DNA of 64,000 nucleotides from Epithemia pelagica (taxonomy: Eukaryota; Protista; Bacillariophyta). The position numbers and the translations under genes were made by a program. Below, piece after piece: positions 3,829 through 44,443 of the stretch; position 1 is the stretch's first letter, and each line of letters starts with the position of its first letter. The stretch is taken from NCBI GenBank assembly GCA_946965045.2, contig OX337239.1:2418001-2482000 (forward strand), written 5' to 3'. The notes under the pieces are model-generated. The model did not search any database. It worked only from the letters and a program-made list of their open reading frames with translations, and was not told the origin of the DNA.

Positions 3829-4316
3829 GATGCCTTGTTTCTATGGTCAATCAATGGGAGACAAAGCAGTCGTTTGGGTATATGGACAAAGGGAAACGAA
3901 GTAACAAGAATCATCCTTCACCATTGGCATGGTATCGTCCAAGCAACGGATGATTGCTTCCGAGTGAGAAGTGCCGTATAAGAATTCGGAACTAATGTGT
4001 GACATTCTCTGAGAAATAGATTTAATTAGAAAATTTAAAGTGGTAATGAAGTTATGTCGCAAAAATGGGGGTATTTATTGTCGCAGGCAGGTCGTGTGTG
4101 TGCACGTGTGTGGCGGGCTGGCTCGAAAAGCACGTTTTGTCGGAATGGATGGGATCCAAAGTGCTCCTTACGAAACATTTTGGTCCAAATTAGTACGGGC
4201 TATCGCGGTGCCAAATTGTCAGGTAGACCAGATATTTGCCAGAATCCAGAAATCCAGAAAATCCTGAATAACTCGACCGGGTGTTGATCTTTTTCAAAAC
4301 AGAAAGATTATCAGCA

Positions 4317-4339
4317 GATAGAGCTCGTCGAGCTCTGTC
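4317..4339. repeat. Hairpin with an 11-bp stem, within a repeat-rich candidate transposon subterminus
   Basis: gatagagctcg-t-cgagctctgtc (one mismatch). Nearby are ccagaa(a)t tandem units (~4239-4268) and cagaatttctggc twice (~4384, ~4528). Confidence 0.6.
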
Positions 4340-4813
4340 GATTCCGCTGCTTAAAATTGAAAAAAGGCAACATGGTCGTGACTCAGAATTTCTGGCGTGA
4401 CTCGTGCGCCAAACCGTCAGGTTGCTTCTACGCCAATTTTTCCGCGTGTGTCACAAAATCCTGGAGGTCGCTACTATGGTTTTGAGTCGCACAAGAAGCA
4501 AAGACACACCGCGCGTATTCCCGCGCGCAGAATTTCTGGCCGGATGCGTTCGGCGGCAAGTTCGGAGGCCATTCGTCGTTCTCTGACATGCCACCACCAC
4601 ATTGCATATGCCAATCACCAATCACCAACCATTCTATGAATTCCCCCTATTACCGTAACGCAATCTTTTTTTCTGTTTTCCAAAGAACAATCGACAAAGC
4701 AGCTCAAACAGAAACAAACGCTCAAACAAAAACAAACGTGTTGACAACAACCATTATTTATCATACTAACGAAACACTTTTGTTGAACGTGTCAAGAGAG
4801 AAGAATGGTTTCT

Positions 4814-5732
4814 ATGCATGTATCCACAGTTTCGCTCCTCGCCATGGCATGCATGCCATGGCAATCGTTGGGCTTTGGCAGTGTGACTCCATGGATTCGG
4901 TCGTCGGAGAGTTTGATCTGGAAAAGGTAGGTTTCCAGGAGGTCTCGGAACGATGTATGTGTGGCGTAAGCTCATATGGTTCCTTCTTGCCTCGTGCTAC
5001 CAACTTTATAACAGACCACATGGGAAGGATACCCCGTTCATGAAAGATCCACAACAGTACAGACACTCCAGAGAACATGTGTCACCCCAAACTCCTACAA
5101 CAACCACAGCAACAACAACCTCCCTCTGCTCCAGCAAGGCACCGCAACAACACAGTAGTCGGAATCGCAGTACGAAACGTGATTTGGACCACATGCTGGC
5201 CTTTATTCACGAACCACCCAATTTGTTGGATCCCTCCGATTTGAATCCATCGACACCCTTGGATTGTGACACAATGGATTTGATTCATTGCATTGTCAAG
5301 GCTGCCGATGGTCGCAAGGCCTCCGATATTTGTGCCCTGCAAGTTCGTCACATTACCTCCCTCACGTCCGCCCTGGTGATTGTGTCGGGCACGTCCCGAC
5401 CGCAAAATCAAGCCATTGCGGCCGCCATTACCGACGATGTCGAATTGCAATTTGGACAGCAGCCGGGGGGAAATGGGATTCCCGAAGGGAGTGCCGAATC
5501 GGGATGGATGCTCCTCGATTATGGCAGTGTCATGGTTCATATCATGACGCCCAAATCACGCTTGTTTTACAATGTCCAAGGACAATGGATGCAAAAGGGG
5601 GGACGGTCCATGGATTTGACCGACATTCTCATTCCCAATACCGTTGTCGGTGGTGGGGATTCTTGGACCGCCGGAGGAGCACTACCTACAACGGGGGAAC
5701 CGGCCGAAGAAGAAGATCCGTTTTGGTCCTAA
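4814..5732 (+). CDS. rsfS: Ribosome silencing factor RsfS/Iojap, probably plastid-targeted; exons 4814-4926 and 5015-5732
   Basis: VKAADGRKASDI..LVIVSGTSRPQNQAI..WMLLDYGSVMVHIMTPKSRLFYNV is the RsfS signature. A GT-AG intron at 4927-5014 joins an in-frame signal-peptide exon (MHVSTVSLLAMACMPWQSLG-F). Confidence 0.85.
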
Positions 5733-6312
5733 CAGAAGCACACACAATTTTTTAAACTCTGCCGTTTGTTTTTCTATTTAGTTATACACACACAGACTCT
5801 CTCTAGTGCATTCTGCCCTCGATCCACAAGCACCAAACTGTTCGTCCTGGAACAACTCGTTGGGGAGAAACAGGACGTGTGTGCAGTTTTTTCTTTGCGC
5901 ACACTTTTTGTGTAGCGCACGGCAACAGGCATTGGCAGAATGGGAGTAGCGTTTTCGTCCATACGGGAGGATTTGTGGAGACAGGATTGTGCTGCCTCTA
6001 GTCATCTCTCTCGGAAAAAGATTCTAAGAACGCAAAAGTCATTCGCCAGGACCGGAACACCATTCGATACCTTCCTCAAATCACCACCACTGGAATCCTC
6101 CTAGTGTCTCCATTCTTTGGAAACTCCTTCCAAGAACACAAGATTCAGATTCTGTGTGATCCAATTCCGCAAAGATCGTAGTACAGAAACAGCCAGTAAC
6201 GTAGGCAAAGGGAATTTTGGCCTTGCGTGGTCACAAAGACACAACAGCTGGAATTCCCCCAAAGAGGCACGACTCGTCCGAGACGAGATTGGAGAACGAG
6301 ACAGAGAGAGAC

Positions 6313-7761
6313 TCAATCCTTGAGCCGTGACTGCGGACGCCAGGAGGGGAGTGGAGCAACGACCAAAAGAACCGCCAGTGTAAGCAAGACGGCACCGACC
6401 ATGCCCTGAGGACCCAACGGTGGTTCTGTCTCCGGGTCCAAGAGGAGCCAGGCAATCGCTGCTGTGCCCAGTGGTTGCAAGGAATAAATGAGATTGGCCG
6501 TCACGGGTCGGACTGTTTGTTGTCCGACGGTTTGAGCTTGAATGGTGTAGGCAATGGTCACCAAACCCGTCCACATCATGGCACCCACGGCCCGCCAGAC
6601 TTGTTGTTGTTGTTGGTGGTTGTTCGCTATGTCCTCATTCCACACTTGGTCGTGGAGTTGATGGAAATAGTCTTGAAGGATTCTGCCTTGTTCTTGGAAC
6701 AGTCCAAGTACGTAATTTCCTTCCATACCAGGAGCATCCATTCTTGTGGTCGAACACAGTAAGGCCAACGAAATGACAACAAGGGCGCAAGCACATTCGG
6801 TACAAGCCTTGACAGCGGCCAGTTGAATCGGAACACTGTCTTGGGCATGTGTCGTCAGTCGAATAACATGTAAGGTATAGACTAGGGCAGCCATAAAGAT
6901 ATACACATCTCCTCCTGTTTCAAACAGTCCTCCCAAATCATGAAACGGATCACCATGGCGAACCAAAGCATTCGTCGCAGTCATGGGAACCTCAATCAAG
7001 ACAACTCCCAGGAGGGCCAATAGACAGGCAATCCAAGTTTTGAGATTCTTCATGACATGCCACGTTTGTAGTAGCATGGCTTCCACGATTGGTACCAAGA
7101 GAACTTTGATCTGCAACAGGAGCGCGGACCGATCCGCCGAGATTGTCTGCAAGGCAACAAGTTGCATCATGTTTCCTGCAAACAGGTAGATACCCAGTTC
7201 CATGCCTTGTCGAATGGGCCATTGCGGTGGCTGTGACAAAGACACTGCAACCGGAGAGTTTTTTGGTAGACCACTCGTGTTGGCGCCGCTCCAAAGGAGG
7301 AGGACCAGCGATGCAATGAGAAAATAACCAAAGGAAAACAGCAAGGCAGGCACGGGAGGGTCCAATGCATACACATAGCGAACAGCAGGCTCATAGGATC
7401 CCCATGCCAAGGGGACGGTGAACAGAAGGAGAAGGCTGCGCCGTTCCTTATTAATGCTGTTGGTGATGCTGCTAGTGTCAGGATGGTTACTGGATCCCTC
7501 CTCGTCTTGGTTTCGGGTAGCCTTGAATTGTAGAAGAGTTTTACCGTATTTTAGTCGGAAAGGCGACAGATTGAAAGGTTGCATCGTCGTCGTTGTGGTG
7601 TGTTGGATGGGACGACTGGAATGCTGATGAATGGCGGTTGGAGTTGGGGTGAATTTGTAAATGGTCGCAGGACAGCAAAACGAAGTGACAGGTTGTGGTA
7701 CAAGGAGTATCGAAACGGTACGAACAATGGATGTCAGGATCAGAAGCGTCGTTGTTCTCAT
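6313..7761 (-). CDS. EamA/DMT-superfamily membrane transporter with an N-terminal targeting leader
   Basis: Multiple hydrophobic helices; WGSYEPAVR, GMELG.YLF.GN..Q..ALQT.SADR.A.L, YTIQAQTVGQQ.V.P..ANLIYS.QPL. The likely start is M at 7761 (MRTTTLLIL). Confidence 0.8.
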   Translation of the reverse strand: MRTTTLLILTSIVRTVSILLVPQPVTSFCCPATIYKFTPTPTAIHQHSSRPIQHTTTTTMQPFNLSPFRLKYGKTLLQFKATRNQDEEGSSNHPDTSSITNSINKERRSLLLLFTVPLAWGSYEPAVRYVYALDPPVPALLFSFGYFLIASLVLLLWSGANTSGLPKNSPVAVSLSQPPQWPIRQGMELGIYLFAGNMMQLVALQTISADRSALLLQIKVLLVPIVEAMLLQTWHVMKNLKTWIACLLALLGVVLIEVPMTATNALVRHGDPFHDLGGLFETGGDVYIFMAALVYTLHVIRLTTHAQDSVPIQLAAVKACTECACALVVISLALLCSTTRMDAPGMEGNYVLGLFQEQGRILQDYFHQLHDQVWNEDIANNHQQQQQVWRAVGAMMWTGLVTIAYTIQAQTVGQQTVRPVTANLIYSLQPLGTAAIAWLLLDPETEPPLGPQGMVGAVLLTLAVLLVVAPLPSWRPQSRLKD

Positions 7762-8512
7762 GACAACGACGACGATGATGATGCGCCATTTTGCAGAAGA
7801 AATAAAGGCATGCCAACGATTTCGTGGGACGGCGTACAGACAAAGCCTAAACAGGCATTTAGAGCTGCTATGTATGCTATGTATTGTACCATATTGTACC
7901 ACACAGGAGCATAGGTAGAGTTATCGAGTATCGAGGTATCGAAGCACGGGAACGTAAAGACCGTTTTCTTCTATCTCCGCCTTTCTCCTTCCAAGCAAGT
8001 GGCAGAGGGATGCTTGTTTGAGAGAGAGAAAGAGAAACAAATACTGTGCAATCTCTACTACTGTAAAAGGTTGAGGATGATGTGGTACTGGCCGAACCAG
8101 CAAGACCAGGCCAATAAAGATACGAGGCTTTTTCGGGAATGAATGGATTGGTTTCGTGATTCTGGCGTCGTGTCCGTTGGGACCATCCTGTTCTGGAGAG
8201 AGTGTTCTGGTCGTCGTCGTCGAGTTGCGTTTGGAATGGAATGGACTAGGTAGGTAGTTCGCCGTAGAGCCCTGATGTGTGGTGCTACGTGCGTACAAAT
8301 GGAAACAGCCCATATACGACAGGCGCACACCACCAAAGGATTGGGGCGAAACCATCCAATACCACCACATACATACTCTCAATACAAAAGCATGGCTCGT
8401 GATGGGTCCTCCTGATCCGTTCTCGTTTGCCACTTCGACTCATCGACATGGATGCATCCCTCTCCTCCATCCACCGATCGAGGCCGATAGCAATCGGTGC
8501 CCACCATGCCCG

Positions 8513-9667
8513 CTACGGCTTATCGTCGTCGTTTCTGTCGTCGTCCTTCTCTTGCATTTTGAAAGGCATGGCTGGTCGATCCCAAAAGTGGTCCACGGCG
8601 GTGGCCTGCAAGGCTTGTTCTTGTTCCCAGGAAATGCGTCGATACACCATGAAATATTTTTGGCCGCCATTGCGATCCACCTTTTGTCCTTCTTCGGTCT
8701 GCGTCACCATGGCTGCAATGCAGGGATCGTCGTCGTCCGTGTAGTGGTCGTTCTTGTTCTCGTCGTTGTCGTTCACCACCACGACTCGTTGAAACAAGGG
8801 ATGAGCCTCACACTTTTGGACTTGCCAACAATGCAATTCGTAGACATCGGTAATGGCATAGAGTTTGCCGGTATTGTATTGCAGGAAATGAGCATATTCC
8901 GTCAGAAGGCGGTCACTAATGATACGACGGGCATGATTTTTGCGTTTGAAATGGGGATCGGCAAAGCAAAAAAAGAGTTTTTCGAGGGAATGGGGCCGTA
9001 CCAAGTGGGGCAAAAATTTTTGCGCATTCGTCCGCAAGACACTGACGTGATGATGCGTGTCGTGTTGGGAACGAGCGGCCGCGATCCGCAAACGGACATA
9101 TTCCGTCACCTTGGCCCGAATTTCCAAGCCCAAGACAAAGGCCTTGGGGAAAATAGGAGGAGACGACGACGAGGTGTCCGAAGTTGCATTGCTGTCATTA
9201 TTGCTCTTGGATTCCGTCTCATTGGATGCCGCATACAAATCTCCCAAGGCCATGGTCAAGCCACCAAATCCACATCCGACATCGAGAATGGTGGGTTGAC
9301 AGTGATGATGATTGCTGCTGCTCTTGTTGGTTTGTTGATAGTGTGGAAAATGATCGACGGTCCAATCCATGTTCTCGGGACGAATGGGATAGGAAAAGGA
9401 ATCGTTGTGTGACAAGGGATTGCAATGCGCTCGTTGACGATAAAACTTTTTTTGTGGACGTTCGCCATCTTGCGTCAAGGGTTGTGGATTGGCAGCAGCC
9501 GCAGCATGTCGTTTTCGATCCTCCTTGGGGGGGCTCGCCGTCTCCATCCTTGTTGTAGACTGCACGCTATTCTGGAATGGAAGGGCACCGGCACCTTGCT
9601 CTCTAGGTCTTCTGTTGGGGTGGTTCGAACAACAACTCTTTTCTGGCGGATCGTCGTTTTGTGTCAT
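8513..9667 (-). CDS. TRM8: tRNA (guanine-N7)-methyltransferase catalytic subunit
   Basis: KKFYRQRAHCNPLSH, ILDVGCGFGGL, LGLEIRAKV, FCFADPHFKRKNHARRII, ITDVYELH, TEEGQKVDRNGGQKY. Confidence 0.95.
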   Translation of the reverse strand: MTQNDDPPEKSCCSNHPNRRPREQGAGALPFQNSVQSTTRMETASPPKEDRKRHAAAAANPQPLTQDGERPQKKFYRQRAHCNPLSHNDSFSYPIRPENMDWTVDHFPHYQQTNKSSSNHHHCQPTILDVGCGFGGLTMALGDLYAASNETESKSNNDSNATSDTSSSSPPIFPKAFVLGLEIRAKVTEYVRLRIAAARSQHDTHHHVSVLRTNAQKFLPHLVRPHSLEKLFFCFADPHFKRKNHARRIISDRLLTEYAHFLQYNTGKLYAITDVYELHCWQVQKCEAHPLFQRVVVVNDNDENKNDHYTDDDDPCIAAMVTQTEEGQKVDRNGGQKYFMVYRRISWEQEQALQATAVDHFWDRPAMPFKMQEKDDDRNDDDKP

Positions 9668-10054
9668 GGTCGATGATGACCAACCACACCGACCACAACA
9701 GACGCCCGACCTGCGTACGTCGTACAGACGAATCCCGAATCAGTCCTGCGGGAATCAAGGGCGAGAACACGTCACCCTCTACTGGCCAACATATTTTCTG
9801 CGACTGAGGATGGAGCAACAAAAAGGATACGGCGGACACAACACCTCATTCCTTTCGCGCATCTTTCTCGTTGGTGTTTTTGTTCCGTTGAATTCCAGAG
9901 AGAGAGACCCAAGCCCTCTCTGGTTGCTGTTGTTGCGAACGACTTGTCTGGTCTGCTCTTGTCGTTGGTCACGTTGTGCTGGTTTTTGAGGCCGTGTGTG
10001 TGGTGGTGACTGTCATTGTCGTTTCGATACACACGCAACAAACGACAACAAGAG

Positions 10055-13000
10055 ATGACGACTACGCCGAGTACGAACCAGGATGACGCCGAAACCAAGA
10101 ACGAGGAGCCATTGGAGTTTTCGGCCCTGTTATTGCAGGATCCTGGTAGCACTCATAGTTTTGGATGATGGGATGACAAGGACGACGAGGATGATGAGGA
10201 TGAGATGCTCGAATTTGTCCCATCCATCACCAACGAGAACGACCAACCAGTGGATGCCCCCCACAAAATGGCATCCACAGCAACATCAACCACAATGGGG
10301 GATACTTCTGTACCAACCACCACCAGCAACAACAACAACAATAACATTGAATCACCACCGCAACCCGCACGTGTTTCGTCGCAGTCGGTTCGACCGCGCC
10401 CCTCCCGAACATTCTCCTCCTTGCTCGTACCCACGCCGCCCGCAACCACAACGACACCGGCGGCCCTGGAAGGACTGTCGCAATCGACGGAACATCATCA
10501 AGAAGTCAAGGCCGTCTTGGAACAAGTCATGGAACAACACAAACAACAACAATCACAACCACAACCACTCGAAGGAGGATTGCATCGTCGGACCAATACG
10601 CGAGGATCCTGGTTGCGTCTTCCACCCGTCAAGGCCGCCTCCGCGTCCTTGTGACCCGAACCGACGACTCCCGGAGAAGCAGCAACAGCAGCAACACCGA
10701 CATCAACGCCGACAGGTCCCACCGAAACTCCCGTAGTGTCGGACCCACCGTCGTCCACCTTGTCCGCCTTGCTCAACAAAGATACGACCAACAACAACAA
10801 CACGACAACGGCCACCTTGGCCGAAACGACGCAATACGTGATTGCCTTGCATCATCATCACGACGAGCCGCCACCACCCCAAGCGCAAGCTACTGCCAAC
10901 AACAACAGTACCAACACTGCCACGACTGCGGCGGATTTTACCGTGACGGCTCCCCTCTTGGAACAACCAGAACAGCAACCAGAGACGACCGAACAACGAC
11001 CCGTCGAATTGATTCATCCAGCCGATCGTGTCTATGCGGCGGCCACGGTCCTCAAGGCGGCGGCCAAATTTCAGTCTGGCAAGAAACCACCCGAGGAGGA
11101 ACACGAAAAGCCTCGTCCGTCGGGACCCGCCACTGTTGCTGCTACGGAAACTGGAGGAGGAGGAGGAGGAGGAGATGGTCCACCCGCCGTTGCCGATGTC
11201 GAAATCCACCCCCTGTGGAACCACACCACGAAACAACGACCAACAATCCTACAACACCACAAGCCGAGGAACGAGATCATCCCTGGTTCTATCGCCGTCG
11301 TCACCCCCATCATCCCGGTTCACAAGACGCCGAAGGAGGAGGCCGTCACAAGAAGAATCCCAAACGCGCCACCACCAAATTGGTTCACGTGGTCCATGCG
11401 GTGCAAGAAGAATGGAATTCCCTGAGTGACTTTTTTCAACCCAGTGGACAAACCGTCAAGGATCAATTGCTGTTCTTGTCGTGGGCCTTGGTGATTCCCT
11501 CCTTGATTGTATCGGGCATTTTGTTTTACTTGGTGGGCAATCCACCGGTACGTACCACCACACGTAACGCAAAACGAACAATGGAGATGTCGCATTGTGT
11601 TGCCTATAACTCTTTTCTACTTATTGTTGTTGTTGCTTGTTTTCCTGTGTCTGACGTTGCGGTATGGTTCTTACAACCTCCTGTACAATGAATGAAACAA
11701 CGGACACTACGTCTCTTACCATACGCACGCAAAATATATAGACGGGCCGTTGCAAAAATGATATTCCCTGTGGCTTTGATGCACAGGGCAATCCTTTGGC
11801 GTCGGCCTCGTGGTGGGTCTTGTTTTTGGGTGTCCGACAAGTCGTCACGTGGTTGTTGGCCCGAGTATCCGATGTGTTCTTTTTTGATTACCTTGTCTTG
11901 CAACATCCTCGATTAATTCGCTTGCTTGGACCTCGCATTTCCCTCATTATTATTCAAAGCAAGGGATGGCCGTCCGGTACGTGCATGGAAATTGTTGTGG
12001 TTTGCATTGTGACGGGGTGCGTGGTAACGAGACAATGGTTGTCGACACAAGAGGATGTTGTTGTGGTGTTGCTCATCGCCGTGGGAGATACAGGATACAG
12101 ACAGCTCCCTTTTGTAGAGAGTCAGTTCTTGTTTCTTGGCGTTTCTCACATCAATCGTCTTGTGTGGCAGTCATGCTGTGGTGGGCATTGTGGGATTTAA
12201 TGATTTTGCATGGCAAAGGAGAATTCAATCACCACTGGTTGTTTTGGTACGTTTATGGCGATGGACTGTTGCAGGACTACGACGACATTCCAAATGGCCA
12301 TGGCTCAAACTTTTCTCATTTTTTAATTCGTGTGCTGCAGGCAAGACATTGTGGATATGTTTACCAATGAAAACCCAAGTTGAGACATTCCCATGAACGA
12401 AATCTATCGCAATGTTTTGATCGCCATGATTATCATTGCCGTGTCCGTGTCTTTCAAACGCTATGTGATGAGTCTCTATTTGGGAAAACGTCTTTACTGT
12501 AAGTACTTGGTGTTGTGGTTGGGAACGTTGTGGTGCAATGTAATGCCTCTGTTTTTGGAATGGTCTCGTCTGATGCACTTTGTTTTCGTTTTGGTCTACC
12601 TTTTGTTCGGTACGGTTTAATGAGCGTTTGGCGGAACTCATGAAGGAGATCACGCTGATTAGTGAACTTTCGCTTTGGGCCCGACGAAAGCGCGATCAAA
12701 AGGCTACGTACAAAGCTTGGTCCGTAGATTTCGAGGCTCAGCAACAAAAGCAACAACAAGGTCCAGCATCCCCGCGCAAGGCCAAGTCCTATCCCAATGC
12801 AAGCAAGGAGAAGGCCGTGCGCGAAACCAGCTCCAGGGTTGGGTCGTCGACCTACGGTGACGAGGCCATTGATTACGACAGTCTCTTGGAAAAGTGGTCC
12901 GAACCCAAGAGACAAAATGGTGAAGTAAGTGATAGGCACTGCGTTGTCTAGGCTTTTCGTTCGTGTGGGAAGTCGTGTACTCATGTGTGATGTTGCTTGA

Positions 13001-33072: not shown

Positions 33073-34518
33073 AGTGAGTAGTAGAGGTGCAAAGAAGCAA
33101 AAAACGAGAAGGAAAGAACAAGCGAAATAATTTTTTGTGGGAAGAGTGTGTGGGTCTTTTTTCGGTTTTGCCTTTGGTGGGATCTGACATCTGACACGAA
33201 TTGAAGCGGATGACGGGTGGGGAGAAGGGACACCGAGCCCAAGGAAGGGACAAGGATGCTACGTGCGACAGTGGCAGTGGCCACGCACTATCTATCCACG
33301 ACAACCGCGAATGGGACTTCTTCGGGGTATGTTTGTTGGGGAAACTTGGAAGGGCAACTCCGTCCGCATAACAACAACCAAGCTTCAAGATCTCTTGGCA
33401 AGATACAAAAAGCTACTCGCACGATACAAACGTCGCGAGCGGGTTTGCGGTAGTTCCCCGTGGTTCTGTCGCGTTGAATTCGCACGAGTCCGTGGAGGGA
33501 GTTGCGCACGCAAGAGGTAGCATCAGATCCCGCCTGAGTCGGTTCTCGGCTCCCATCTTCTTCTGCTTCCGCAACTTCTACTGCCTGCGCGGGATCTGAT
33601 ATCTGATAGGTGAGATTGTCCGAAACAAAGGGAAATTGTTGAAAACCGGTTCTGCATTCGCGGACCCAAAGTTCCGCCGCTAGCGCACCGCGCGAAGCAC
33701 CAACACAACGATCAACGATCCATGAGAAATCCGAACGCCAAGTAAGGGCCTTACGAGTAAGTTCGCGACCATGAGACATTCAAAACAGGATCAGCAATCA
33801 GCACGTGGAATCAGTCATTCCATGATTTATTGGGAGTGATTCTAGATGGACCCGATGTAAAAGTCAGCTTGAAATCAAGCGCAACCGGTTTCGGAATACG
33901 AATACACTCAGGCCCAGACATTCTCTTCACGTTCTCCTACTCTTGTGTGATAGAGGTTCTCCATGCGGAAAGAGAAGCCCATCCAGCAAAATACAAATAA
34001 TGACCGAACCCAACCGACTTCAATCTCCTAAAAATAGCAATGAGAAGAATTAACAAGTCATAATGACTTTATGGGGTCATTGCTCGTATTTGACTTATGC
34101 TTTTTGTTCTTCCATGACTTTTCAAAGTCATCTTCGTGTTTGGAGCTTACAGCCCTACAAAATACGAATACAGGGCTAAAGCGCCCTTCAAGATCAGGAT
34201 GACAAGCATAAGTTCCTTATTACAACTATTGTTTATCGCAAGACATGATGCAATACAGCCCATGATTTCTCCCTATCATATTCCTTAATTCCAAAAGTCA
34301 TTCGGACGATCAGACACAAGGACTTACAACTATGAGTAACGGGATACGGGGTCCTGGGTAAAAACTATGCAATTACCACAAACTACCTCCTCTCTAGCTA
34401 GCTTGGAGTAAATACCCTCGACTTGATATAGGACTCTACTAGAGCTAGTAGAGTCGACGAATGGAGTCCACAAATGGGGTGTTCCCAACGCACCCTAACC
34501 AGAGACCACCATCATCTG

Positions 34519-34940
34519 GGTTACCCGGTACTATGTCCATTATAGTGTACAAACTAGTTCTGGGCTATAGTGGATAGTCTTATTAAGTATAAGTTGTGGA
34601 CATGCGTCGTCCTCTTATGTAATTTTTGAGTCCTCCTAAGTAAGAATATCTGACATGAATGAGAATAAGAGATTGTGTACCCGTTGAGTCGTACAAAGAA
34701 TATTGCCTTCACAGTTACTTACATAATCACAAAATGTAACATATAACCCTATACGATAATAAGTACTATTCCAACGGCTTGTGACATCTACTTATTCGGC
34801 GAAAAAGACAAATGGACAACCATGAAACGGACAACTGACATCAATGACCATGGTGGTCCAAGGCCCTTGCGCATCACCAATATACCGTCCGAAACATTAA
34901 AGAGGTCTTCTATAATGCGCACAAGGTCACTGGGCCCATG
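34519..34940 (+). repeat. Left terminal inverted repeat (~420 bp)
   Basis: Aligns by eye with the reverse complement of ~41493-41909 with scattered mismatches. Confidence 0.9.
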
Positions 34941-35345
34941 GGACACCTTCATTGACAACTGCTAAAATGAATCGGACATTGGACAATCGGACACGGACAA
35001 CGGACAATGGACATGGACAGTGGACAATCGGACACGGACAATGGACAACGGACATGGACACGAAAAAGACAAAACCTTTTGGTTGACACAACACGTCCAT
35101 CCACACCAACCAACCATCAAAGTCAACACCCACAATCGTGTTGACACTAACAAAGCACTATGCAGCAATCAAACTCGCGTATTGTGCATGGGGGACGTTA
35201 TTGACAAGGAAACAGGACAATTGGACAACGATGGACAACGATGGACATGATGGACACAGTCAGACGACTGCATCAGATCCAAACAACAATCAAACAAAAG
35301 ACCAAGTGACAGAGAATCGACACAACAATCATAGAAGAAGCTATT

Positions 35346-35957
35346 TTAAGCAGGCTTTGGCTTGGTATTACGCAGGTCGACATGGTCAGTCTTTCGCTTC
35401 TTCTTGTGCTTTCGAAGGAATGCGTTTCGTTTCTTTGCTTCTTTCTCTTCTTTCTCGATGCGCTTCTGTTCGCAATAGAACGCGAACTTCTGACGTCGGA
35501 TCTCTTGATAGATATGCTGACGGAATACAGTCAAGTCGAATTGACGGTATTCCTCACGCAGGTTGCGAAGGACACCCGGCGTAAACCTCTCGTGCATCTT
35601 GTCTTTCACGTCTTGCGCGAGCAGCTTCTTGGCATCGGACATATGCCAGAAGGGGCGTCCAAAGGAGTCGACCTTGGAGGGAGGATGAAGTGCCAGGTCG
35701 TGTTGGAGAGCAGCTTCCTCGTGGCTTGTCGCTTTCTGACGTCCTATGACCTGTCGCTTGTGGTCATAGAAACGTTGCTCGAATTGGGAAAAAACAACAA
35801 ACTCTCGAATAAACATTTCGTCGGTAGCGTAGATGGCCCACGCCTCTTCTGCTGATAGTTCCATAGGAACGACACCAGCCTCTAAATCACTAATGATTAT
35901 TTTCCTAGACTGGCTATTCCGCCAATCAATCCAATCTGGATTCGTCGACGACGGCAT
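35346..35957 (-). CDS. Element-borne hypothetical basic protein (possible helical nucleic-acid-binding protein)
   Basis: Intact ORF (likely start MPSSTNPDWIDWRNS); two W..S.AK/SR-type helical blocks, FRQHIYQEIRRQK, Lys-rich tail. Confidence 0.65.
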   Translation of the reverse strand: MPSSTNPDWIDWRNSQSRKIIISDLEAGVVPMELSAEEAWAIYATDEMFIREFVVFSQFEQRFYDHKRQVIGRQKATSHEEAALQHDLALHPPSKVDSFGRPFWHMSDAKKLLAQDVKDKMHERFTPGVLRNLREEYRQFDLTVFRQHIYQEIRRQKFAFYCEQKRIEKEEKEAKKRNAFLRKHKKKRKTDHVDLRNTKPKPA

Positions 35958-36541
35958 GGTAGGAAGTAGGAAGAGCAAAATGTGAGAGCCCGAAAGAAGA
36001 GGTGCGCTTCCAGCTGCCACTATAGTACTTAGTGTGCCCCCCCCCCCCCCCCCCGCAACGCCGGGGGACCTCCTCGGCCAAATTTTGAACTAGGCACGAT
36101 CGTCACAAACACGGGAGCACAATGTCGAACCCAATCCCAGAAGTGCCAAACCATATGGAAACACGACACTAAGTGATGGACCCGACTGAGCATGGTGTAT
36201 AGCAGTTGAAATAGAACTCTAGGAGTAGGAGTAGGAGTAGGACGTTGAAACCACGGGAAGCGATTCCCGCTCAACGACGACTATTGCTGCGCGATTCATG
36301 TTTGGACGCCAAATCATAGCGAAACATGTCTCACAGCGAGGCTGCAAAGACTTGACTAAAGCATGCTCGTTTATATGCATCTATAACACTTAAAATAGAA
36401 CTAGGAGTAGGAGTAGGGCGTTGAAACGGGAAGCGGTTCCCGCTCAACGCTGCATGACTCATCTGCTTGGACTTCCACGACCACCAAGAGGTTTGCCATC
36501 CAGTTGATTGTTGTCTGTTGTCTCATAATCTGGCCAAGACG

Positions 36542-37896
36542 ATGCCCCGAAAGCCAAAAGTTTCGGATCATCAAGTGGCCACGCTCCTTCAGCACATTGA
36601 GGAACAGAACAAGCCGCGTTCGCAAGTTACTTTCTCGGACATTGGTGAGTTGCTGTGTTGACTGTTTCGCTCTATGTGCTGCGTGGATTGTTGAGTTCTC
36701 AGATGTGCCATCTCATATGTCTACGTTTGATTGTCGTTTCAGTTGCTGCCACCGGTTCCACATACGGAACGTCGGGAGACAACTTTCGCACGCTCCAAAA
36801 GCGTTGCTCCCATTTCACGAATCTCTCGATTGAAAAGTATTACGCGTTGCTCCAAAAGCACAAGCAAACTCCCAACAATCACACTCAGACCGAGTGGTCT
36901 GAGTACGAAGACTTGCAGGCATACGAAGAGGAGGTAAAGGAGAAGAAAGCAACAGCAGTCAAGGTTGAGCCCACGATCGACAACGACGCAACTTACGACC
37001 AAGGACACGCAGCAACTTACGACAACGACGACTGGACAGTGGACGAAAGTGTGCAGACGCCTCTCCGACCAAGGTTTGTTGGCCAACCGGCACCCAGACC
37101 CCCTTTAGCACTGAAGAACCCAGCACCCCCTCCAACTTCTGATTTCCGCCCGATCGCTTTGTCAACCCCGAACACGATCCCCAAGCCTGCCGATATCGTC
37201 CGCATCCATCGTTCCCCAGCTCGCAAGATGTCTTCAACTCCGTTCAAGTCGATTGTAAGCGAGGACACGCATCCCCCCTTGGGAACTGCCGAGAACCCTT
37301 ACATCGTCTATTTGAACCTTCATTGCCCGGAGGCTAATGGACCCTTCGAAGTGTTTGTGATGAAGGGGCTGGAGTACAACTCCATGGATCGTACGGTGTA
37401 CATGATCCGGTTGTCCGTTCATCCGAACGACTCGAAGCTTTATACTGCCAAGGTCAACATGACCGACGACGACTTCAAGGAGAAGTCAGTGCATGTGACG
37501 GGGCCTTGGCGTGACAGCTGGCACAAGGACAGCGACCAATTTCTCGAGATGGTGGACGAAGACTTCCACCAGGCCTGTCAGAAGGCACTCAAGAAGGCCG
37601 CGGCAAAGAGCACCAGCTCCAACTATGGGAACAAGCACTGGGAATTGATCTTCCCCGACGGCGTTGTCCTCGACAACACCGTCTTCCGTCCAGGAAACAA
37701 CACTCTGATAGCAAAGGAAAAGGCCCTGATGCATCAGGTGGCCGGAAAAGATGAGAAAGGCAAGGACATTGTCTTGTATGGAATGTTCTTGCACTGGTGG
37801 ATTGCTGAAAAGAATGGGGCGGAAGAAATGGGTCACGACGCGGAGGAAGAAGAGCTTGCGTCCCTTTTGAAGCGCAAGGCAAGGATCACGAAGTGA
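36542..37896 (+). CDS. Element-borne protein with an N-terminal helical (Myb/SANT-like?) region; exons 36542-36644 and 36743-37896
   Basis: A 98-nt gtgagt...ttcag intron joins MPRKPKVSDHQVATLLQHIEE..SDI to VAATGSTYG.. in frame. The Myb-like assignment is an inference from typical Harbinger ORF2. Confidence 0.7.
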
Positions 37897-38140
37897 TCAC
37901 ATTATGAAAATTATGAGAGCATGAATGAGAATGAATGAACGATATTGATAGCACACTATAACAAGACTAAACTCGTGATTGAGAGAATCGAACAATTAGT
38001 AGAAAGATATGTCCCCTTCAACGTCTCAACGCTGTTCTTTAGGCTAGCTGGCTGCCAGTATAAGTTGGAGGAAGACAAGTTTTCATTTTTTTTACCAAAA
38101 CGATCATTTTTGTCGTTGCCCCAAAACTTCACCCTTCACC

Positions 38141-38926
38141 ATGGGCAAGTCAGAGCAAAATCAAGTTTCAGACTTGAAAAAACTCGCGAAACGATGCGAG
38201 AAGCAAAAGAATCGGAAGTACTCAACAACAATCAGCGCACAGCAGCAGCGAGTCAACAGGGCTGTCGTCGCTGTCAAAGCAAAACCTGGTCGAGCTCCCA
38301 AGAACTTGGTCAAGAAGCTCGACGAGCTTCTGCACACAACAAACCGTGGAACGCTCAACGCGTTCATTGCCGACAAGATCGACTGCACCATCGACTTGTC
38401 TGGCGCCAAGGTCCGGAAGGAATATGGGACGAAGAAGACTGGGAAGCCAGCGTCGACGCTTCTCAACCCCAAGTCGACATCGAAGAATTTTGTTGTGTTG
38501 AGCGGTTCGGTTCAGATTCCGCTGGATGGTGTCAGCTGGGTGATCAGTTACGGTGGTTGTGCCCTGCTGCGGATCGCAAAGTCAGGGATGGAGGGAGGAG
38601 GATTTGGTTTGTTTGCGGAGAAGGACTACGAGGAAGACGAATGTGTTGGGTACTACTGTGGCCGAATGATCAGCGGCAAGCAGATCAAGGCATCAAACTA
38701 CTCCATCAAGACAAGCACCAATCCACCTCAAGTTTGGCAAGCACGGCGAGAGGATGTGTGGATGGGTCTTCACTTTGTGAATGACCCATTCTTGTCGAAC
38801 TATGGAAAGACCAAGGTGGACAGTGAATCCACAAAATATAACATCAAAATAGACGGCAATCTACGAGTAACAGCCAAACGGTTCATTCGTAAAGGAACCG
38901 AGTTGTTCTTGCATTACAACTATTAG
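38141..38926 (+). CDS. SET-domain protein (putative lysine methyltransferase) carried inside the transposon
   Basis: IAKSGMEGGGFGLFAEKD..GYYCG, LHFVNDP, RVTAKRFIRKGTELFLHYNY; Lys-rich N-terminus; no post-SET cysteines. Confidence 0.85.
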   Translation: MGKSEQNQVSDLKKLAKRCEKQKNRKYSTTISAQQQRVNRAVVAVKAKPGRAPKNLVKKLDELLHTTNRGTLNAFIADKIDCTIDLSGAKVRKEYGTKKTGKPASTLLNPKSTSKNFVVLSGSVQIPLDGVSWVISYGGCALLRIAKSGMEGGGFGLFAEKDYEEDECVGYYCGRMISGKQIKASNYSIKTSTNPPQVWQARREDVWMGLHFVNDPFLSNYGKTKVDSESTKYNIKIDGNLRVTAKRFIRKGTELFLHYNY

Positions 38927-38976
38927 AACTTAAAATCTTAGAACGACTCATCACTAATTGACTTTTTAGGCTACGA

Positions 38977-39912
38977 TTAGATAGAAAAAAGCGGTGCTCC
39001 GTTTTCGATCTGGTATTGCACCATAACGCAAACCGCTTCAAATGCTGCCTTGTGCAGCAGGGGATCATGACGGAAGGTTTGTGAGAGGATCGCGAAGTTT
39101 TTGATCCTCTCGTTGAAAGTCTCGTGTCGCGAACGAGCACGGGCTTTGAAGCCAGCCAACGCCTTGCTGTCAGCTCTGTTCGGCGTGGCAAGCTTGCGGA
39201 TCTCGTCCGGTTTGGACGAGTTGTACCCACGATCGGCGATTGCCATCTTGCCATCCACGAGCATATGCTTCAGCCCTTCACGGAAGATTGTTAGGTCATG
39301 CTTTCCGCCTCGATGTGGACCGTTGATCCACACAAGGTTCCCATCCCAAACCGATATAGCAAGCTCATATTTCAAAGCAGCATGTTTGAATTTGTTTGAG
39401 TAGTACTTTCGGTCAACGGGTAGGGTGGGATGTCGTACCTCCCAGATTTGCATGTCCACACCATCTACCGTGACTGCAAATTGTGCGCTCTCTGGTAGGT
39501 CGAGCTCTTCTGACCACACAATCTTCTTGACCTTCAACCCCTGGATCTTTTGGATCCATTTCCAAACATGCTCGCCACGGGAGACCCTTTCGCATTGTCG
39601 AAAGCGCGTTGCGACCAAATACGAATTCTTCGGGTACGTCGTCATAAAGAAGAGTGAGACGAGAAACTTCTTCAGACCCGAAGCAGTGTTCTCCGATGGA
39701 CTGAGTCTCAACGACGGGTCCTCGGATGTTCGGAGATCATGCCAGATCTCCGCGACCACAACCTGATTCGAGCCGTAGTGGCTCCGAAAGATCGTCTCTT
39801 TCATTTTCTCATTCATCCTTTGCTTGACGTGGGGCGCAATCCCTGCAATAAGAACTCCATGCTCGAGCATGTCTTGCGGTGTTTCCAAGATCAAAGGCCT
39901 ACCTCGCGCCAT
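38977..39912 (-). CDS. PIF/Harbinger (DDE_Tnp_4-like) transposase
   Basis: VTVDGVD, YSNKFKHAALKYELAI..G.LVWINGP..GG.HDL, AIADRGY, ARSRHETFNERIKNF.IL. Likely ATG at 39912 (the ORF opens at 40008). Confidence 0.92.
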   Translation of the reverse strand: MARGRPLILETPQDMLEHGVLIAGIAPHVKQRMNEKMKETIFRSHYGSNQVVVAEIWHDLRTSEDPSLRLSPSENTASGLKKFLVSLFFMTTYPKNSYLVATRFRQCERVSRGEHVWKWIQKIQGLKVKKIVWSEELDLPESAQFAVTVDGVDMQIWEVRHPTLPVDRKYYSNKFKHAALKYELAISVWDGNLVWINGPHRGGKHDLTIFREGLKHMLVDGKMAIADRGYNSSKPDEIRKLATPNRADSKALAGFKARARSRHETFNERIKNFAILSQTFRHDPLLHKAAFEAVCVMVQYQIENGAPLFSI

Positions 39913-40174
39913 TCTAGAAAATACCTGTCTTCCGCGAAAAACTAAAATTACGTGTGCTTCTACTATGTTTGTTTTTGGCTCGCTGATGTTTTGGGGCGCG
40001 TCCCCCATCCCGCGGGGCGAATTCTGCTTTCTGTCACGTTCACAAAACCAATCGATGGAAACTCATTTTTTTGCCTACTTTGATCATTCCTACTTCGATC
40101 ATTTTAGCTACGAGCAAGGAGTAAAGAAGAAGAGCAAGGAGTAAAGAAGAAGATCATCAAGAGGCAATAGAACC

Positions 40175-40597
40175 ATGTCCCAGAAAGGAGAACCCATTCG
40201 CTTTGTCGCTGGGACCTACAATGGTAAACGGGGCTGGATTGACATCAGCCGCGCTGCGACGGCGAAGATGTTTCCAGTGATTGTCGACATGGGAGAAGGG
40301 GTGGAAAAGATCACGGCGGTGAGGAAGACAAGTGTCCAGAAGCAAAGTGAGCGGAAAGAGCCTTCCTCTTTTGAGGAGGCAATCTTGGATCAGCAGCCGA
40401 AGGTGAAGCATGCAATGAAGAGGCTTGTCACCAAACTTGCGCAGTGTGGCCTCCAAGACTCTGGACCGATGGCCCTCCTCTTCAAGCTTATGCTTGATGA
40501 GGCCATCGAGCACCAGGAACGCTTGGGCCCCGACGCCGATTGGAAACACATCCGAATGCCCGATGCACCCATGAGTACAGCACAGGACATTGACTAG
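40175..40597 (+). CDS. Element-borne small protein with an N-terminal KOW-like motif
   Basis: KGEPIRFVAGTYNGKRGWI fits the KOW pattern; intact 140-aa ORF divergent from the transposase. Confidence 0.6.
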   Translation: MSQKGEPIRFVAGTYNGKRGWIDISRAATAKMFPVIVDMGEGVEKITAVRKTSVQKQSERKEPSSFEEAILDQQPKVKHAMKRLVTKLAQCGLQDSGPMALLFKLMLDEAIEHQERLGPDADWKHIRMPDAPMSTAQDID

Positions 40598-40756
40598 GGA
40601 AAGAGAAACCTTGAGTTGGTTTGTCGATGACGACCATAATGCCCTACGCCCTACATAGTTGAGTAGATAATAATCATAGTAATCGATTAAGTGCATATAA
40701 ATAGTCTCTATTTTATCCCAAACATGCCTTTTGATTGTTGTTTCACTGTTGTTTGC

Positions 40757-41492
40757 CTAAATTCCTTCATTGTTGGCCAACTTATTGTCTTTCCTTGTTG
40801 TCCGATTCTGTCCATTGTGTCCATCTTTGTCCAACACCCTTGTCCATAACGTCCCCAATGCACAACACGCAAGTTTGATTGTTGTATGATGCTTTGGCAG
40901 TGTCAACATGATCGTGGGTGTTGACTTTGATGGTTGGTTGGCTGGGATCCCAGCATTACGACGGTCATAATCCCATTGTGAAGGTGCTCCCTTTTTCGTG
41001 TCCTCGCGCGTCCGTGTCCATTTGCGCGCTGTCTTTTTCGATTTGTTGTGTCCATAGCCCCCATGTGACCGCGTAGGATGCTCTCCAGGGACCTCACGAC
41101 ATGTCTTGAGACCGCCCAATGCTCAGTTGATTGCTACATGGCACTCATGGAGCTCAAACACCTGTCTTTCTTTGTTGTCCGATTGTGTCCATCGTTGTCC
41201 ACCGTTGTCCAAGACCCTTGTCCATAACGTCCCCAATGCACAATACGCGAGTTTGATTGTTGTATGATGCTTTGTTAGTGTCAACACCATTGTGGGTGTT
41301 GAATTTGATCGTTGGTTGGCTGGGATCCCAGCATTACGACGGTCAAAATCCCATTGTGAAGGTGTTGTCTTTTTCGTGTCCGTGTCCGTTTGCACGCTGT
41401 CCGTGTCCGTTTCGACCTTGTCCATGGACAATTCGACCTTGTCCGATTCAAGTTTTTTGTTGTCAATTACTCCATACTGTCTCATTGCGGCG
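40757..41492. repeat. Subterminal tandem duplication (two ~378-bp units)
   Basis: cccttgtccataacgtccccaatgcacaa at 40837 and 41215; ggctgggatcccagcattacgacggtca occurs twice; one inverted counterpart lies at the left end (~35100-35250). Confidence 0.85.
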
Positions 41493-41909
41493 TCCCACGT
41501 GCCCAGTGACCTTGTGCGCATTATAGAAGACGTCTATAATGTTTCGGACGGTATATTGGTGATGCGCAACCCCACCATGGTCAGTGTTGTCAGTTGTCAG
41601 TTTCACGGTTGTCCATATGTCTTTTTCGCCGAATAAGTAGATGTCACAAGCCGTTGGATTAGTACTTATTATCGTATAGGGTTATAAGTTACATTTTGTG
41701 ATGATGTAAGTAACTGTGGAGGCAATATTCTTTGTACGACTCAACAGGTACACAATCTCTTATTCTCTTTTTCGTCAGATATTCTTATTTAAGAAGACAC
41801 GAAATTTACATAGGTGGACGACGCATGTCCACAACTTATACTTAATAAGACTATCCACTATAGCCCAAATCTAGTTTGTACACTATAATGGACATAGTAC
41901 CGGGTAACC
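41493..41909 (-). repeat. Right terminal inverted repeat (~420 bp)
   Basis: Reverse complement of the left TIR. Confidence 0.9.
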
Positions 41910-43057
41910 CTGTGGTGCCCATCATCGGTATGCCATTGAATCAGACTGGGTTGGGACCACCACCACTTGATGGATCCAAAGAAGTTGGAGAAATGATTTT
42001 TCCGACAATGGCGGTCCGACTCTCCTTGTCGTCAGCACGCAATCTAGGTATACTTCATAATGGTCCACAACAAGCTACACTTGGCGAGCCCCAGAGTTTT
42101 CGTGGCACTGCTTTGTTTGTTGGCAACTTTTGATGAGTGTTCCCAAAACACCATTCTGTCTCGTGCCTCCTTTGCTGGGTGTTTCCATATGTCATATGGT
42201 GTCGTCCACACTGCCTTCCCAATGAGCCATCGCAGAGATGAACAGGATGCCAACTATAGACTGGAGCGTGCCTAGGTAGGAGCACCACACAACGGAACCC
42301 ATTGTATTTTAGGAGGTGGTGTTTATCACAGTTGTTCGTTTGTGCCACCACTGAAGAATTGACTAGAAGCAACAAGATGACAAGGAGACGGAGCTGAATT
42401 GTGGAACTGATGATACAAGTGTCCATCGTCATGAGAGACAATGGGATTGATCGAGAAATATGAATCGACAATGGATGGAATTGATTGTAACCTTATGAAT
42501 CTCAAAATTTTTATGAGCAAACTGAATATGATAGATTGTGATCTATGCCTCCCTTTCAATAGATAGTCTAGTGTCTAGTCTACCGCTGTCCTCATGGTGA
42601 GGACAAGTATACCCCAGTACATTTTCCTACGCAACGGAAAATCACTCAATTTTCAAAGTGGTTTTCAAGGCTTGGGGTAAAAATTCTCTACAGGAAATCG
42701 AATATGAGGAATTTTTTGATATGTTCAGTGGTCGAATCGGCCAAACTTTTTAAAGAAAAATTTATGTTCCAGATTTGAATTTCTTGTAGGCTTTCTACGT
42801 AGGGTACCCGGAGGTAGATTAGACACTAGAGAGTACTTACGGAGGATCGGTCCGCGGATGACGTCATGATTATCCGCTTTCTAAAAGCGACCCCAACGAC
42901 GCACCATGGACGCGATCCGCACACCAACACACACAAGAAGCAGGACACTGTCGTCGTGATTGTCATTCTGAATCCACCTCCCCACGACGACGACAATAAC
43001 AACAACAACACCAATAAGAACAAACACAGTCCATCTAGCCATTCCCAAGAGACCCTC

Positions 43058-44443
43058 ATGTCGTCGTCGGATCCGGAACCCATCCCCACCAAGGACAAGG
43101 ACCGCACACCGGAGGATGCTGCCATGGCAGCAACACTGGCAAGTCCAGCACTACTGGCACCCACCACGGCCGGTACCGACCCAACCCAACAACAATTGCA
43201 ATTACCACAACAAGAGGGACAAGTTCCCAGTCGTGTCGTGAAACCGGAATCTACACCCAGCATCACCACAACGACGGCAGCAGCCATCACCTCTGCTCCA
43301 ATCGTGGTGAGCCAGACCAATGACAACGACAACGACCATGACAAACCCAAAATGGAACCAACCACCACGACAACAACAATTTCTACGGAATCCTCCCAGT
43401 CGAAACTCGCCAATGCTACTCCGACCAACCCAAACAACAACAACAACCAAACTACTACGAATCACGAGGATGCCATGGTAGATAATGTCGTCTCCACCAC
43501 ACAATCCACGAACCCGAACGAGGACAAGAAGGACGAGGTGATGCAAACCACCCAGGACGACGACGACGACGACGACGACGACAAGGAAGAGGACCACAAG
43601 ACCCACACGGAGAAGGACCCAACATGCACAACCACAACAACCACAACTAGTACGACTACTGCAACAACCTTGGCGAGTCCGGCGTATACACGGTCCAAAC
43701 GGAAACGACTGGAACAAGAGCAGGCCATGGAACCACCGGCCTCCAAACGACGACAAGTCAATACGGGTCCAGAGGATTCCACGACGACAACTCGACGGGT
43801 GGAACCGTCCACCAGCACGGCAACCACCACAGCCACGACAAGGGCAGCCGACGACCATCAGTCACTGCCCAGCAGGGACGCAATGACCAACACCAGCACG
43901 GATCTGCCCCACCACCGTGCGGAGGAATGTACCCAAGAACAGCATTCTGCTCCTCCTCTTTCGGTATCGACACCGGAATTGACCTTGATTACTCAAGCCC
44001 AGGTCGAATTGGCCAATCGTCTCGTCTTTTCGACCCTCGAAAATCCCACGACACAACACTTGCTCCAAGAATTGAATGTCGCGGGCAATTCCGTCTCGGG
44101 ATTGGCCTTGGTCCAAGGTCGTCATGGCTTGAGACGACCGACCGTCTTGGAACGGTGGTCTCCGTACGAAATTGCCGTCTTTCAAGCCGCCTTGGCTCAT
44201 CACGGCAAGCACTTTGAATTGATTCATGACGAATTGCCCAGTAAATCCGTGCCTGAACTGATTGACTTTTATTATGCCTGTTGGAAAACCACCACGCACT
44301 ATCAAGCCTGGAAACAAGCCTACGTGCCACCCCATTTGGATCACGATGACGATGACGACGACGAACACGATGCGAACAACAACAATAACAACAAGGATAA
44401 AAACAAGAAGAAGGAAACAACCAACACGAGAGAAAAGAAATGA
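43058..44443 (+). CDS. SANT/Myb-domain protein (corepressor-type SANT) with a low-complexity N-terminus
   Basis: ERWSPYEIAVFQAAL..HGKHF..I...L.SKSV.ELIDFYY..WK. Likely start MSSSDPEP (the ORF opens at 42866). Confidence 0.85.
   Translation: MSSSDPEPIPTKDKDRTPEDAAMAATLASPALLAPTTAGTDPTQQQLQLPQQEGQVPSRVVKPESTPSITTTTAAAITSAPIVVSQTNDNDNDHDKPKMEPTTTTTTISTESSQSKLANATPTNPNNNNNQTTTNHEDAMVDNVVSTTQSTNPNEDKKDEVMQTTQDDDDDDDDDKEEDHKTHTEKDPTCTTTTTTTSTTTATTLASPAYTRSKRKRLEQEQAMEPPASKRRQVNTGPEDSTTTTRRVEPSTSTATTTATTRAADDHQSLPSRDAMTNTSTDLPHHRAEECTQEQHSAPPLSVSTPELTLITQAQVELANRLVFSTLENPTTQHLLQELNVAGNSVSGLALVQGRHGLRRPTVLERWSPYEIAVFQAALAHHGKHFELIHDELPSKSVPELIDFYYACWKTTTHYQAWKQAYVPPHLDHDDDDDDEHDANNNNNNKDKNKKKETTNTREKK

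Follow-up and report, generated by a model that had tools for sequence, protein, structure and literature searches.

Does a DNA transposon that carries the gene of a SET-domain methyltransferase gain anything from it? This question is raised by an element of 7,391 bp at positions 34519-41909 of a 64,000-nucleotide stretch from the diatom Epithemia pelagica (assembly GCA_946965045.2, contig OX337239.1, positions 2,418,001 to 2,482,000, forward strand). The whole stretch is called the window here, and its positions are used throughout. An initial annotation, made from the letters of the window, had described the element as a five-gene PIF/Harbinger transposon with a SET gene of its own. The anatomy and the family membership are near certain: this is an autonomous DNA transposon of the PIF/Harbinger (PHIS) superfamily. 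Our best explanation as a whole combines this anatomy, a descent within a diatom lineage and a chromatin-acting SET protein that benefits the element, and we give it a probability of roughly 55%. The functional part, taken by itself, is tentative.

Structure and copies of the element

The inverted terminal arms (34518-34856 and 41572-41910) are 339 nucleotides (nt) long and 93% complementary, with further inverted matches inward of them. The terminal 39 nt are the same at both ends and were found nowhere else in the window, with 0 chance matches expected. The left junction reads ...CATCAT CTG, then GGTTACCCGG..., and the right junction reads ...CCGGGTAACC, then CTG TGGTGCC.... Exact boundaries, long terminal inverted repeats (TIRs) and a CTG duplication had been claimed in the initial annotation and all were borne out, as was a layout of five genes in two divergent units. 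The first unit pairs the gene of a 203-amino-acid (aa) protein on the minus strand with the gene of a 418-aa protein, followed by the SET gene, on the plus strand. The second pairs the transposase gene on the minus strand with the gene of a 140-aa protein on the plus strand. The SET and transposase genes are convergent and 50 bp apart. The features of the element are as follows.

34516..34518, no strand: left target-site duplication CTG, repeated after the right end
34519..34856 within the element, plus strand: left TIR, beginning GGTTACCCGG (inverted-repeat match, 39-nt end identity)
34919..35318, plus strand: left sub-terminal array of the GGACA(A) motif, 19 copies in 400 bp
35346..35957, minus strand: 203-aa basic protein (first called ORF224), with homologues in the related families L006 and L007
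36198..36449, plus strand: divergent intergenic region with a direct repeat of about 80 nt (36198-36276 and 36382-36449; repeat match)
36542..36644, plus strand: exon 1 of the 418-aa gene (first called ORF413), helical N-terminus, ATG at 36542
36645..36742, plus strand: predicted intron of the 418-aa gene, 98 nt, GT..AG, frame restored
36743..37896, plus strand: exon 2 of the 418-aa gene, disordered middle and conserved C-terminal beta-sandwich (homologues, model)
38141..38926, plus strand: SET-domain protein, 261 aa, helical basic N-terminal half and SET domain at about residues 142-261 (Pfam, AlphaFold model)
38977..40008, minus strand: DDE transposase, 343 aa (Pfam DDE_Tnp_4)
40175..40597, plus strand: 140-aa accessory protein (first called KOW-like), divergent from the transposase, with homologues at the same position
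40719..41518, minus strand: right sub-terminal array of the GGACA motif in inverse orientation, 19 TGTCC
41572..41909 within the element, minus strand: right TIR (inverted-repeat match, 39-nt end identity)
41910..41912, no strand: right target-site duplication CTG, matching the left CTG

The transposase matched Pfam DDE_Tnp_4 (PF13359) with an E-value of 6e-10 and 39.4 bits (cutoff 24.8), and its triad (D182, D259 and E296) was invariant in 14 transposase relatives, in agreement with its annotation as an intact PIF/Harbinger transposase.

Five full-length copies of the element (L001-L005, L003 being the window element) were found at five different loci of one European Nucleotide Archive (ENA) assembly. 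The copies showed the same ends and different surroundings, and their target duplications were, in order, CTG, CCG, CTG, CAG and CAG, which upholds the proposed CWG-type duplication with one CCG besides. Pairwise identity was 99.3-99.8% over about 7.4 kb. Because the copies are near-identical and lie at distinct loci, each with its own 3-bp duplication, the family is recently mobile. All five genes, whose co-occurrence in other copies had been proposed as a check, were present in each copy. Damage was seen in L004, where the transposase is shortened, 47 bp are deleted and the 140-aa gene contains a stop, and in L005 (transposase frameshifts). Exact look-up in a protein collection returned 4 of the 5 predicted products, in small clusters whose members all came from that assembly.

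The SET gene as part of the element

The SET gene lies inside the exact ends shared by the five copies, with the same position and orientation in 5/5 copies and in two elements of Epithemia clementina, and the SET segment is not flanked by inverted or direct repeats. The gene is therefore integral to the element and not a nested insertion, and the concern that it might be present in a single copy, or nested, was ruled out. A composite or artefact, in which the SET gene came with a separate nested insertion or was a host gene that two TIR-like repeats happened to enclose, is very improbable: the unusual number of genes is the only point in its favor, and it fits neither the ends and 3-bp duplications of the five copies nor the unbracketed SET segment and the gene order in E. 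clementina.

Two sister families in the same genome, L006 and L007, encode transposases 55-57% identical to that of the window, and in both of them homologues of the 140-aa, 418-aa and 203-aa genes are arranged, in order and orientation, as in the window element. The L006 and L007 elements have no SET gene. L006 has 527-nt TIRs and a CAG target duplication. The E. clementina element L009 has the order 418-aa-like (plus), SET (plus), transposase (minus) and 140-aa-like (plus), the same as in the window, and L008, also from E. clementina, has the 140-aa-like gene, the transposase and SET. The amino acid identity between E. clementina and the window was 56-59% for the transposase, 38-40% for SET, 41% for the 140-aa protein and 36% for the 418-aa protein. 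The E. clementina copies are 93% identical to each other and partly decayed, and they are older than those of the window family. A 531-aa open reading frame (ORF) resembling a pogo/Tigger-type DDE transposase adjoins a decayed SET-bearing copy (L009 4236-5831).

In a quick maximum-likelihood tree of transposases, the window and three E. clementina sequences formed a group (88 by the Shimodaira-Hasegawa-like approximate likelihood ratio test, SH-aLRT), sister to L006 and L007 (99), inside a 98% clade. Since L006 and L007 have the other four genes without SET, and the tree is compatible with a gain after the split, a four-gene diatom Harbinger lineage probably gained the SET gene in a single event, at a site between its transposase and 418-aa genes. 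On this evidence the SET gene appears to be a late, lineage-specific addition on the branch made up of the window family and the E. clementina families.

More than 120 relatives of the transposase were found. The named ones are diatom proteins (E. clementina and Fragilaria crotonensis) and many others come from Joint Genome Institute (JGI) metagenome contigs. A metagenome scan was made with the transposase alignment, and the surroundings of 80 transposase loci were searched by tblastn. A homologue of the 203-aa protein was present near 22/80 loci, of the 140-aa protein near 8/80 and of the 418-aa protein near 7/80. The same search found the SET gene near 0/80 of these loci, which hold more distant transposase relatives and lie mostly on contigs of only a few kb. 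The diatom lineage that duplicates a 3-bp CWG-type target always carries the transposase with the three accessory genes (203-aa, 418-aa and 140-aa).

Motifs and fold of the SET protein

The SET protein matched the Pfam SET domain with 27.4 bits (cutoff 22.4). A phmmer search returned 105 proteins at E <=1e-3, of which about 8-9 aligned over the full length, including the helical basic N-terminal half. The family alignment showed conserved GxG (GFGLFA), YxG (YYCG) and HFxNDP motifs and a C-terminal ELFxxY (ELFLHY) containing Y259, a tyrosine present in at least 90% of the family sequences. The canonical NH(S) is ND throughout the family, with Asn kept and His replaced by Asp, and it reads as a conserved family-wide change and not as decay. 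The protein ends 2 residues after the catalytic Tyr motif and has no post-SET region.

The AlphaFold (AF2) model of the SET protein had a mean predicted local distance difference test score (pLDDT) of 77, with values >90 in much of the SET core. Foldseek matched the model with a probability of 1.0 to MLL1, EZH2, PRDM9, SETD8 and SET7/9, and among reviewed proteins the matches were PRDM12, SETD7 and set-1. The best match of the family profile in the PDB was EZH2 (2e-6). Signature and fold together point to a putative compact SET-domain lysine methyltransferase. In a viral structure library, giant-virus SET proteins matched best (Medusavirus, E 5.5e-7, 26% identity; also phaeoviruses), though E-values of different structure libraries are not comparable, and no viral protein was among the sequence-level relatives.

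Relatives of the SET protein in Tc1/mariner-like elements

Relatives of the SET protein were also found in a 7-kb element of the same genome, present as two copies, L012 and L013, which are 99.3% identical and lie at different loci. The element has TA on both flanks and 33-nt TIRs.

L012 4031-11025, contig ctg1325l: first copy
L013 about 4064-11025, contig ctg1358l: second copy

Its 1051-aa protein, which has distant relatives with DDE_3, is predicted to be a very divergent giant Tc1/mariner-like transposase. The SET relative in L012 (P0140) is full-length and 30-34% identical to the window protein, with an acidic tail and the shared N-terminal KQxNRKY region. The L012/L013 element also holds three small orphan ORFs, and tblastn found no gene other than SET common to it and the Harbinger element. 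The L012 insertion lies inside a tandem array of host genes that have a weak, sub-threshold 2OG-Fe(II) oxygenase match.

A third setting was seen in L010 (assembly ERZ25042306; features at 2942-4425, 7956-8978 and 10346-11920). Here two copies of a DUF7769 Tc1/mariner-like transposase gene on one strand, of which one is intact (524 aa) and the other broken, enclose a SET homologue that is 34% identical, and a Copia element adjoins. No Harbinger gene was found within 8 kb of the L010 SET gene. This could be a composite or one more element with a SET gene, in another diatom-like genome.

The SET tree placed the window, E. clementina, L012 and L010 proteins in one clade (94%) without a resolved internal order. 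Because members of this clade ride in unrelated Tc1/mariner-like elements, the SET subfamily appears to behave as transposon-adapted cargo that moves between transposon superfamilies. Of the SET phylogeny proposed at the outset, the placement with Tc1/mariner-borne proteins was thus obtained; as to the ultimate origin, the structural neighbors of the model settle neither a cellular nor a viral source.

Accessory proteins and sub-terminal arrays

Harbingers normally encode only a transposase and a Myb/SANT-like protein. No Myb, SANT or MADF match was obtained for any of the three accessory proteins in Pfam scans, and the PDB profile search gave no sequence match. Searches of the ESM Atlas with the three proteins were uninformative (scores 0.51-0.76).

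The gene of the 203-aa protein was first read as a 224-aa ORF; its likeliest start is the ATG at 35957, which agrees with the gene calls and with the homologues. The homologues in L006 and L007 are 42% identical. The protein had no significant match in Pfam, the PDB or the ESM Atlas. Its position and its co-occurrence, the widest of the three among the metagenomic loci, put it first among the candidates for the canonical second Harbinger protein, and it would be the oldest partner of this transposase clade. A division of the protein into two Myb-like halves was rejected (internal-repeat BLASTP, E 8.4).

The intron of the 418-aa gene runs from a GT donor at 36645 to an AG acceptor ending at 36742, and the splice restores the frame. 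This prediction, already part of the initial annotation, is supported by the L007 homologue, a single 501-aa ORF that is colinear across the intron point and has no intron. Run searches turned up DNA runs of the source organism only, and their contigs showed neither splice joints nor expression. At the N-terminus (MPRKPKV..SDI), identity to L006 and L007 is 50-54%. Homologues were found in L006, L007, L009 and 7 metagenomic loci, and the C-terminal domain was conserved in all relatives. In the model this domain (residues about 180-360, pLDDT 80-90) is a beta-sandwich with an inserted helical hairpin. Foldseek returned nothing significant for the model, and neither did Pfam or the PDB profile search for the whole protein. 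In VIA-align, the top 40 or so matches of the domain were all CS/p23 or alpha-crystallin (HSP20-like) folds, with Z of 5-7.6, the middling range of the tool, and the CS-domain matches had a root-mean-square deviation of 2.4-3 Å over about 80 residues. We take a CS/HSP20-like protein-interaction fold as a lead for this domain, not an assignment. To our knowledge, a CS/p23/alpha-crystallin-like fold has not been reported in Harbinger accessory proteins.

The 140-aa protein has homologues at the same position in L006, L007, L008 and L009 (41-45% identical). The window protein had no Pfam match at E <=0.1 and no PDB match. Its earlier description as KOW-like goes no further than weak leads, namely an SH3_KIN17_C match of the E. 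clementina homologue (E 0.022, below threshold) and a KOW family at rank 36 in the ESM Atlas (score 0.74).

The background of GGACA(A) in the window is about 3 per kb on both strands, and the sister families L006 and L007 have sub-terminal arrays with a related GACAA core. The arrays of the window element are candidate binding sites of an element-encoded DNA-binding protein. The divergent region 36198..36449 is presumed to be the promoter region of the 203-aa/418-aa pair, and its repeat of about 80 nt may be a promoter element, as may a perfect 20-nt tandem duplication at 40112-40151, between the divergent transposase and 140-aa genes. A scan of the 36198..36449 region for promoters and terminators of bacterial type, irrelevant to a eukaryote, gave no match. 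Immediately upstream of the 203-aa gene, a poly-G/C tract (36040-36056) varied in length from copy to copy (indel run 36042-36054 in the five-copy alignment).

Selection on the SET gene

Between the two E. clementina copies, the SET gene showed a non-synonymous rate (dN) of 0.048 and a synonymous rate (dS) of 0.112, a ratio of 0.43, with a synonymous excess at p = 0.02. The transposase of the same copies had a dN/dS of 0.59 (p = 0.06). With about 40% identity between the window and E. clementina, SET is conserved to a degree similar to that of the other accessory genes (36-45%). The ratio of 0.43, together with a full-length ORF and catalytic motifs kept at about 40% identity, indicates that purifying selection has acted on SET no less than on the transposase. 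A dN/dS below 1, proposed as a check in the initial annotation, was accordingly observed in E. clementina and not among the five copies of the family studied here (see below). The same annotation had taken the intact ORFs as a sign of selection. Intactness mostly reflects youth, since the copies are about 99.5% identical, and it is the conservation relative to E. clementina, with the dN/dS of 0.43 there, that carries the argument for selection. Within the family, the ratio of non-synonymous to synonymous polymorphism (pN/pS) is uninformative on the active lineage, as young copies drift after insertion.

Possible role of the SET protein

In our preferred explanation, the transposase and a DNA-binding partner would attach to the TIRs and to the sub-terminal GGACA arrays and move the element by cut and paste. 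The SET protein made by the element would methylate a lysine on chromatin, in a histone or a chromatin-bound protein, to the benefit of the element. The likeliest benefit would be that host silencing marks are countered or re-written, so that the element stays expressible and mobile. This anti-silencing or licensing role is one that we infer. We know of few transposon-borne chromatin enzymes, and of none that has been tested functionally.

Several results weigh against a SET protein that works for the element in this way. Among the five copies, coding positions varied as much as non-coding ones (1.22% vs 1.33%), with no sign of constraint within the family. The SET gene had 5 non-synonymous and 0 synonymous differences among these copies, where the chance of 0 synonymous differences under neutrality is 0.28. 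Changes from CpG to TpG or CpA made up 26/91 substitutions, with CpG positions forming 11% of the element (p = 4e-6), and the host probably methylates the copies despite the SET gene. The ND in the S-adenosylmethionine (SAM) pocket and the missing post-SET region mean that activity and substrate cannot be assumed. The structural neighbors of the model span H3K4, K9, K27, K36 and H4K20 enzymes, and as they act on so many different lysines, no mark or substrate can be predicted for the protein. The single gain of SET, finally, is read from a quick tree with 88% support. The CpG observed/expected ratio of the element (0.96) is consistent with young copies.

The variation among the five copies would also be expected if SET were a neutral passenger, picked up once like Pack-MULE or transduplication cargo and of no benefit, and most transposase relatives manage without the gene. 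We consider such a passenger unlikely, because the position, orientation, intact ORF and catalytic motifs of SET have been kept relative to E. clementina at about 40% identity, the dN/dS there is 0.43, and close SET relatives are cargo of unrelated transposons.

The cytosine-methylation signature bears on a further alternative, equally unlikely in our judgment, in which the SET protein places a repressive mark (H3K9 or H3K27 type) on or around the element and, without opposing silencing, limits copy number and damage to the host. The low number of copies (about 5 full ones) and EZH2 as the best sequence-profile match in the PDB agree with such self-restraint, but the structural neighbors are equally H3K4, K36 and H4K20 enzymes.

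A substrate other than histones is, by a little, less likely again. SET7/9 and SETD8 have non-histone substrates as well, and both are among the structural neighbors. The SET protein could then methylate the transposase, an accessory protein or a host factor and regulate the assembly or nuclear import of the complex. This would suit a compact SET protein without reader or post-SET domains that is always co-encoded with three conserved partners, one of them with a CS/HSP20-like fold. However, the same SET subfamily occurs in mariner-like elements without these partners, which speaks for a substrate that all hosts have, such as chromatin.

Surroundings of the insertions

The window element is inserted in intergenic DNA upstream of a host gene at 42866-44443, to the right of the insertion, which encodes a 525-aa low-complexity protein with a SANT/Myb-like match below the cutoff (E 0.003). 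In copy L004, a gene for a 1082-aa piggyBac-type (DDE_Tnp_1_7) transposase lies about 500 bp past the right end of the element (L004 12265-15513).

Comparison with known systems

The proposal that this is an undescribed system did not hold. The name HarbingerS was given in 2014 to Harbinger elements that encode a histone methyltransferase of the SET type (Kojima and Jurka 2014, Repbase Reports 14:2243; cited in PMC12730594 and PMC4482050). HarbingerS was described from the oomycete Phytophthora and is placed near Harbinger2/Pangu, with HarbingerS-9_PI lacking a clear duplication (PMC12730594, PMC4482050). SET genes have also been reported in MuDR and Helentron elements of Phytophthora (PMC12730594, PMC4067079), including a SET ORF in a proto-Helentron of P. 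infestans (Thomas et al. 2014, PMC4067079). Compared by description, the window element resembles HarbingerS in being a Harbinger-type element with a SET gene inside its ends, and differs in that its host is a diatom, its 3-bp duplication is clearly of the CWG type, three more genes are conserved and its sister families lack SET. The duplication and the SET-less sisters suggest, without proving, that SET was acquired independently of HarbingerS. What is added here is a five-gene Harbinger variant in five copies, its conservation in E. clementina and a probable single gain of SET. A bolder reading, to which we give a low probability, places the diatom element outside HarbingerS, with a transposon-adapted SET subfamily, one that passes between Harbinger-type and giant mariner-like transposons in diatoms, recruited independently. 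The SET, DNA-binding and CS-domain proteins would then act together at the GGACA arrays, as a module complete in itself, to write a histone mark in cis against silencing. If true, no enzyme-based system of this kind, acting against silencing at the level of histones, would precede it among eukaryotic DNA transposons.

The NuwaI group, defined by a 5'-CWG-3' duplication, was reported in animals only; its elements are about 4.5 kb long and have two ORFs (transposase and Myb/SANT) and TIRs of 12-61 bp that usually start with GGG (Han et al. 2015, PMC4482050). The window family shares the 3-bp CWG duplication (CTG, CTG, CAG and CAG, with one CCG), a PIF/Harbinger-type DDE transposase and a TIR starting with GG. 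Again by description, it differs in its diatom host, five genes, no recognizable Myb/SANT protein, 339-nt TIRs starting with GGT and a total of 7.4 kb. With it, stramenopile algae join the known hosts of CWG-targeting PHIS elements and of multi-gene Harbingers.

VANC of the Arabidopsis VANDAL elements (MuDR) and the TET/JBP dioxygenases of fungal DNA transposons (PMC12730594) are likewise accessory products of DNA transposons that are considered to change the epigenetic state of the elements encoding them. Their biochemistry differs from that predicted for SET: VANC is not an enzyme of the SET kind, and TET acts on 5-methylcytosine (5mC). The TET/JBP cargo has passed between transposon superfamilies, as SET appears to have done here. 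The compact SET proteins of PBCV-1 (vSET) and giant viruses share a minimal SET domain without a post-SET region; the window protein differs by a helical basic N-terminal half of 140 residues that is common to its family.

The L012/L013 element has a full-length relative of the window SET subfamily but an unrelated transposase, TA flanks, 33-nt TIRs, other accessory genes and an acidic SET tail. The four-gene Harbingers L006 and L007 share with the window element the transposase clade, the three accessory genes, long TIRs, GACAA-type arrays and, in L006, CAG; they differ by the absence of SET and, in L007, by an intronless 418-aa homologue. Young SET-bearing copies and SET-less sisters in one genome, with SET also in an unrelated superfamily and the arrangement kept in E. 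clementina, form a natural comparison by which the gain of a transposon from its own lysine methyltransferase becomes experimentally approachable in diatoms.

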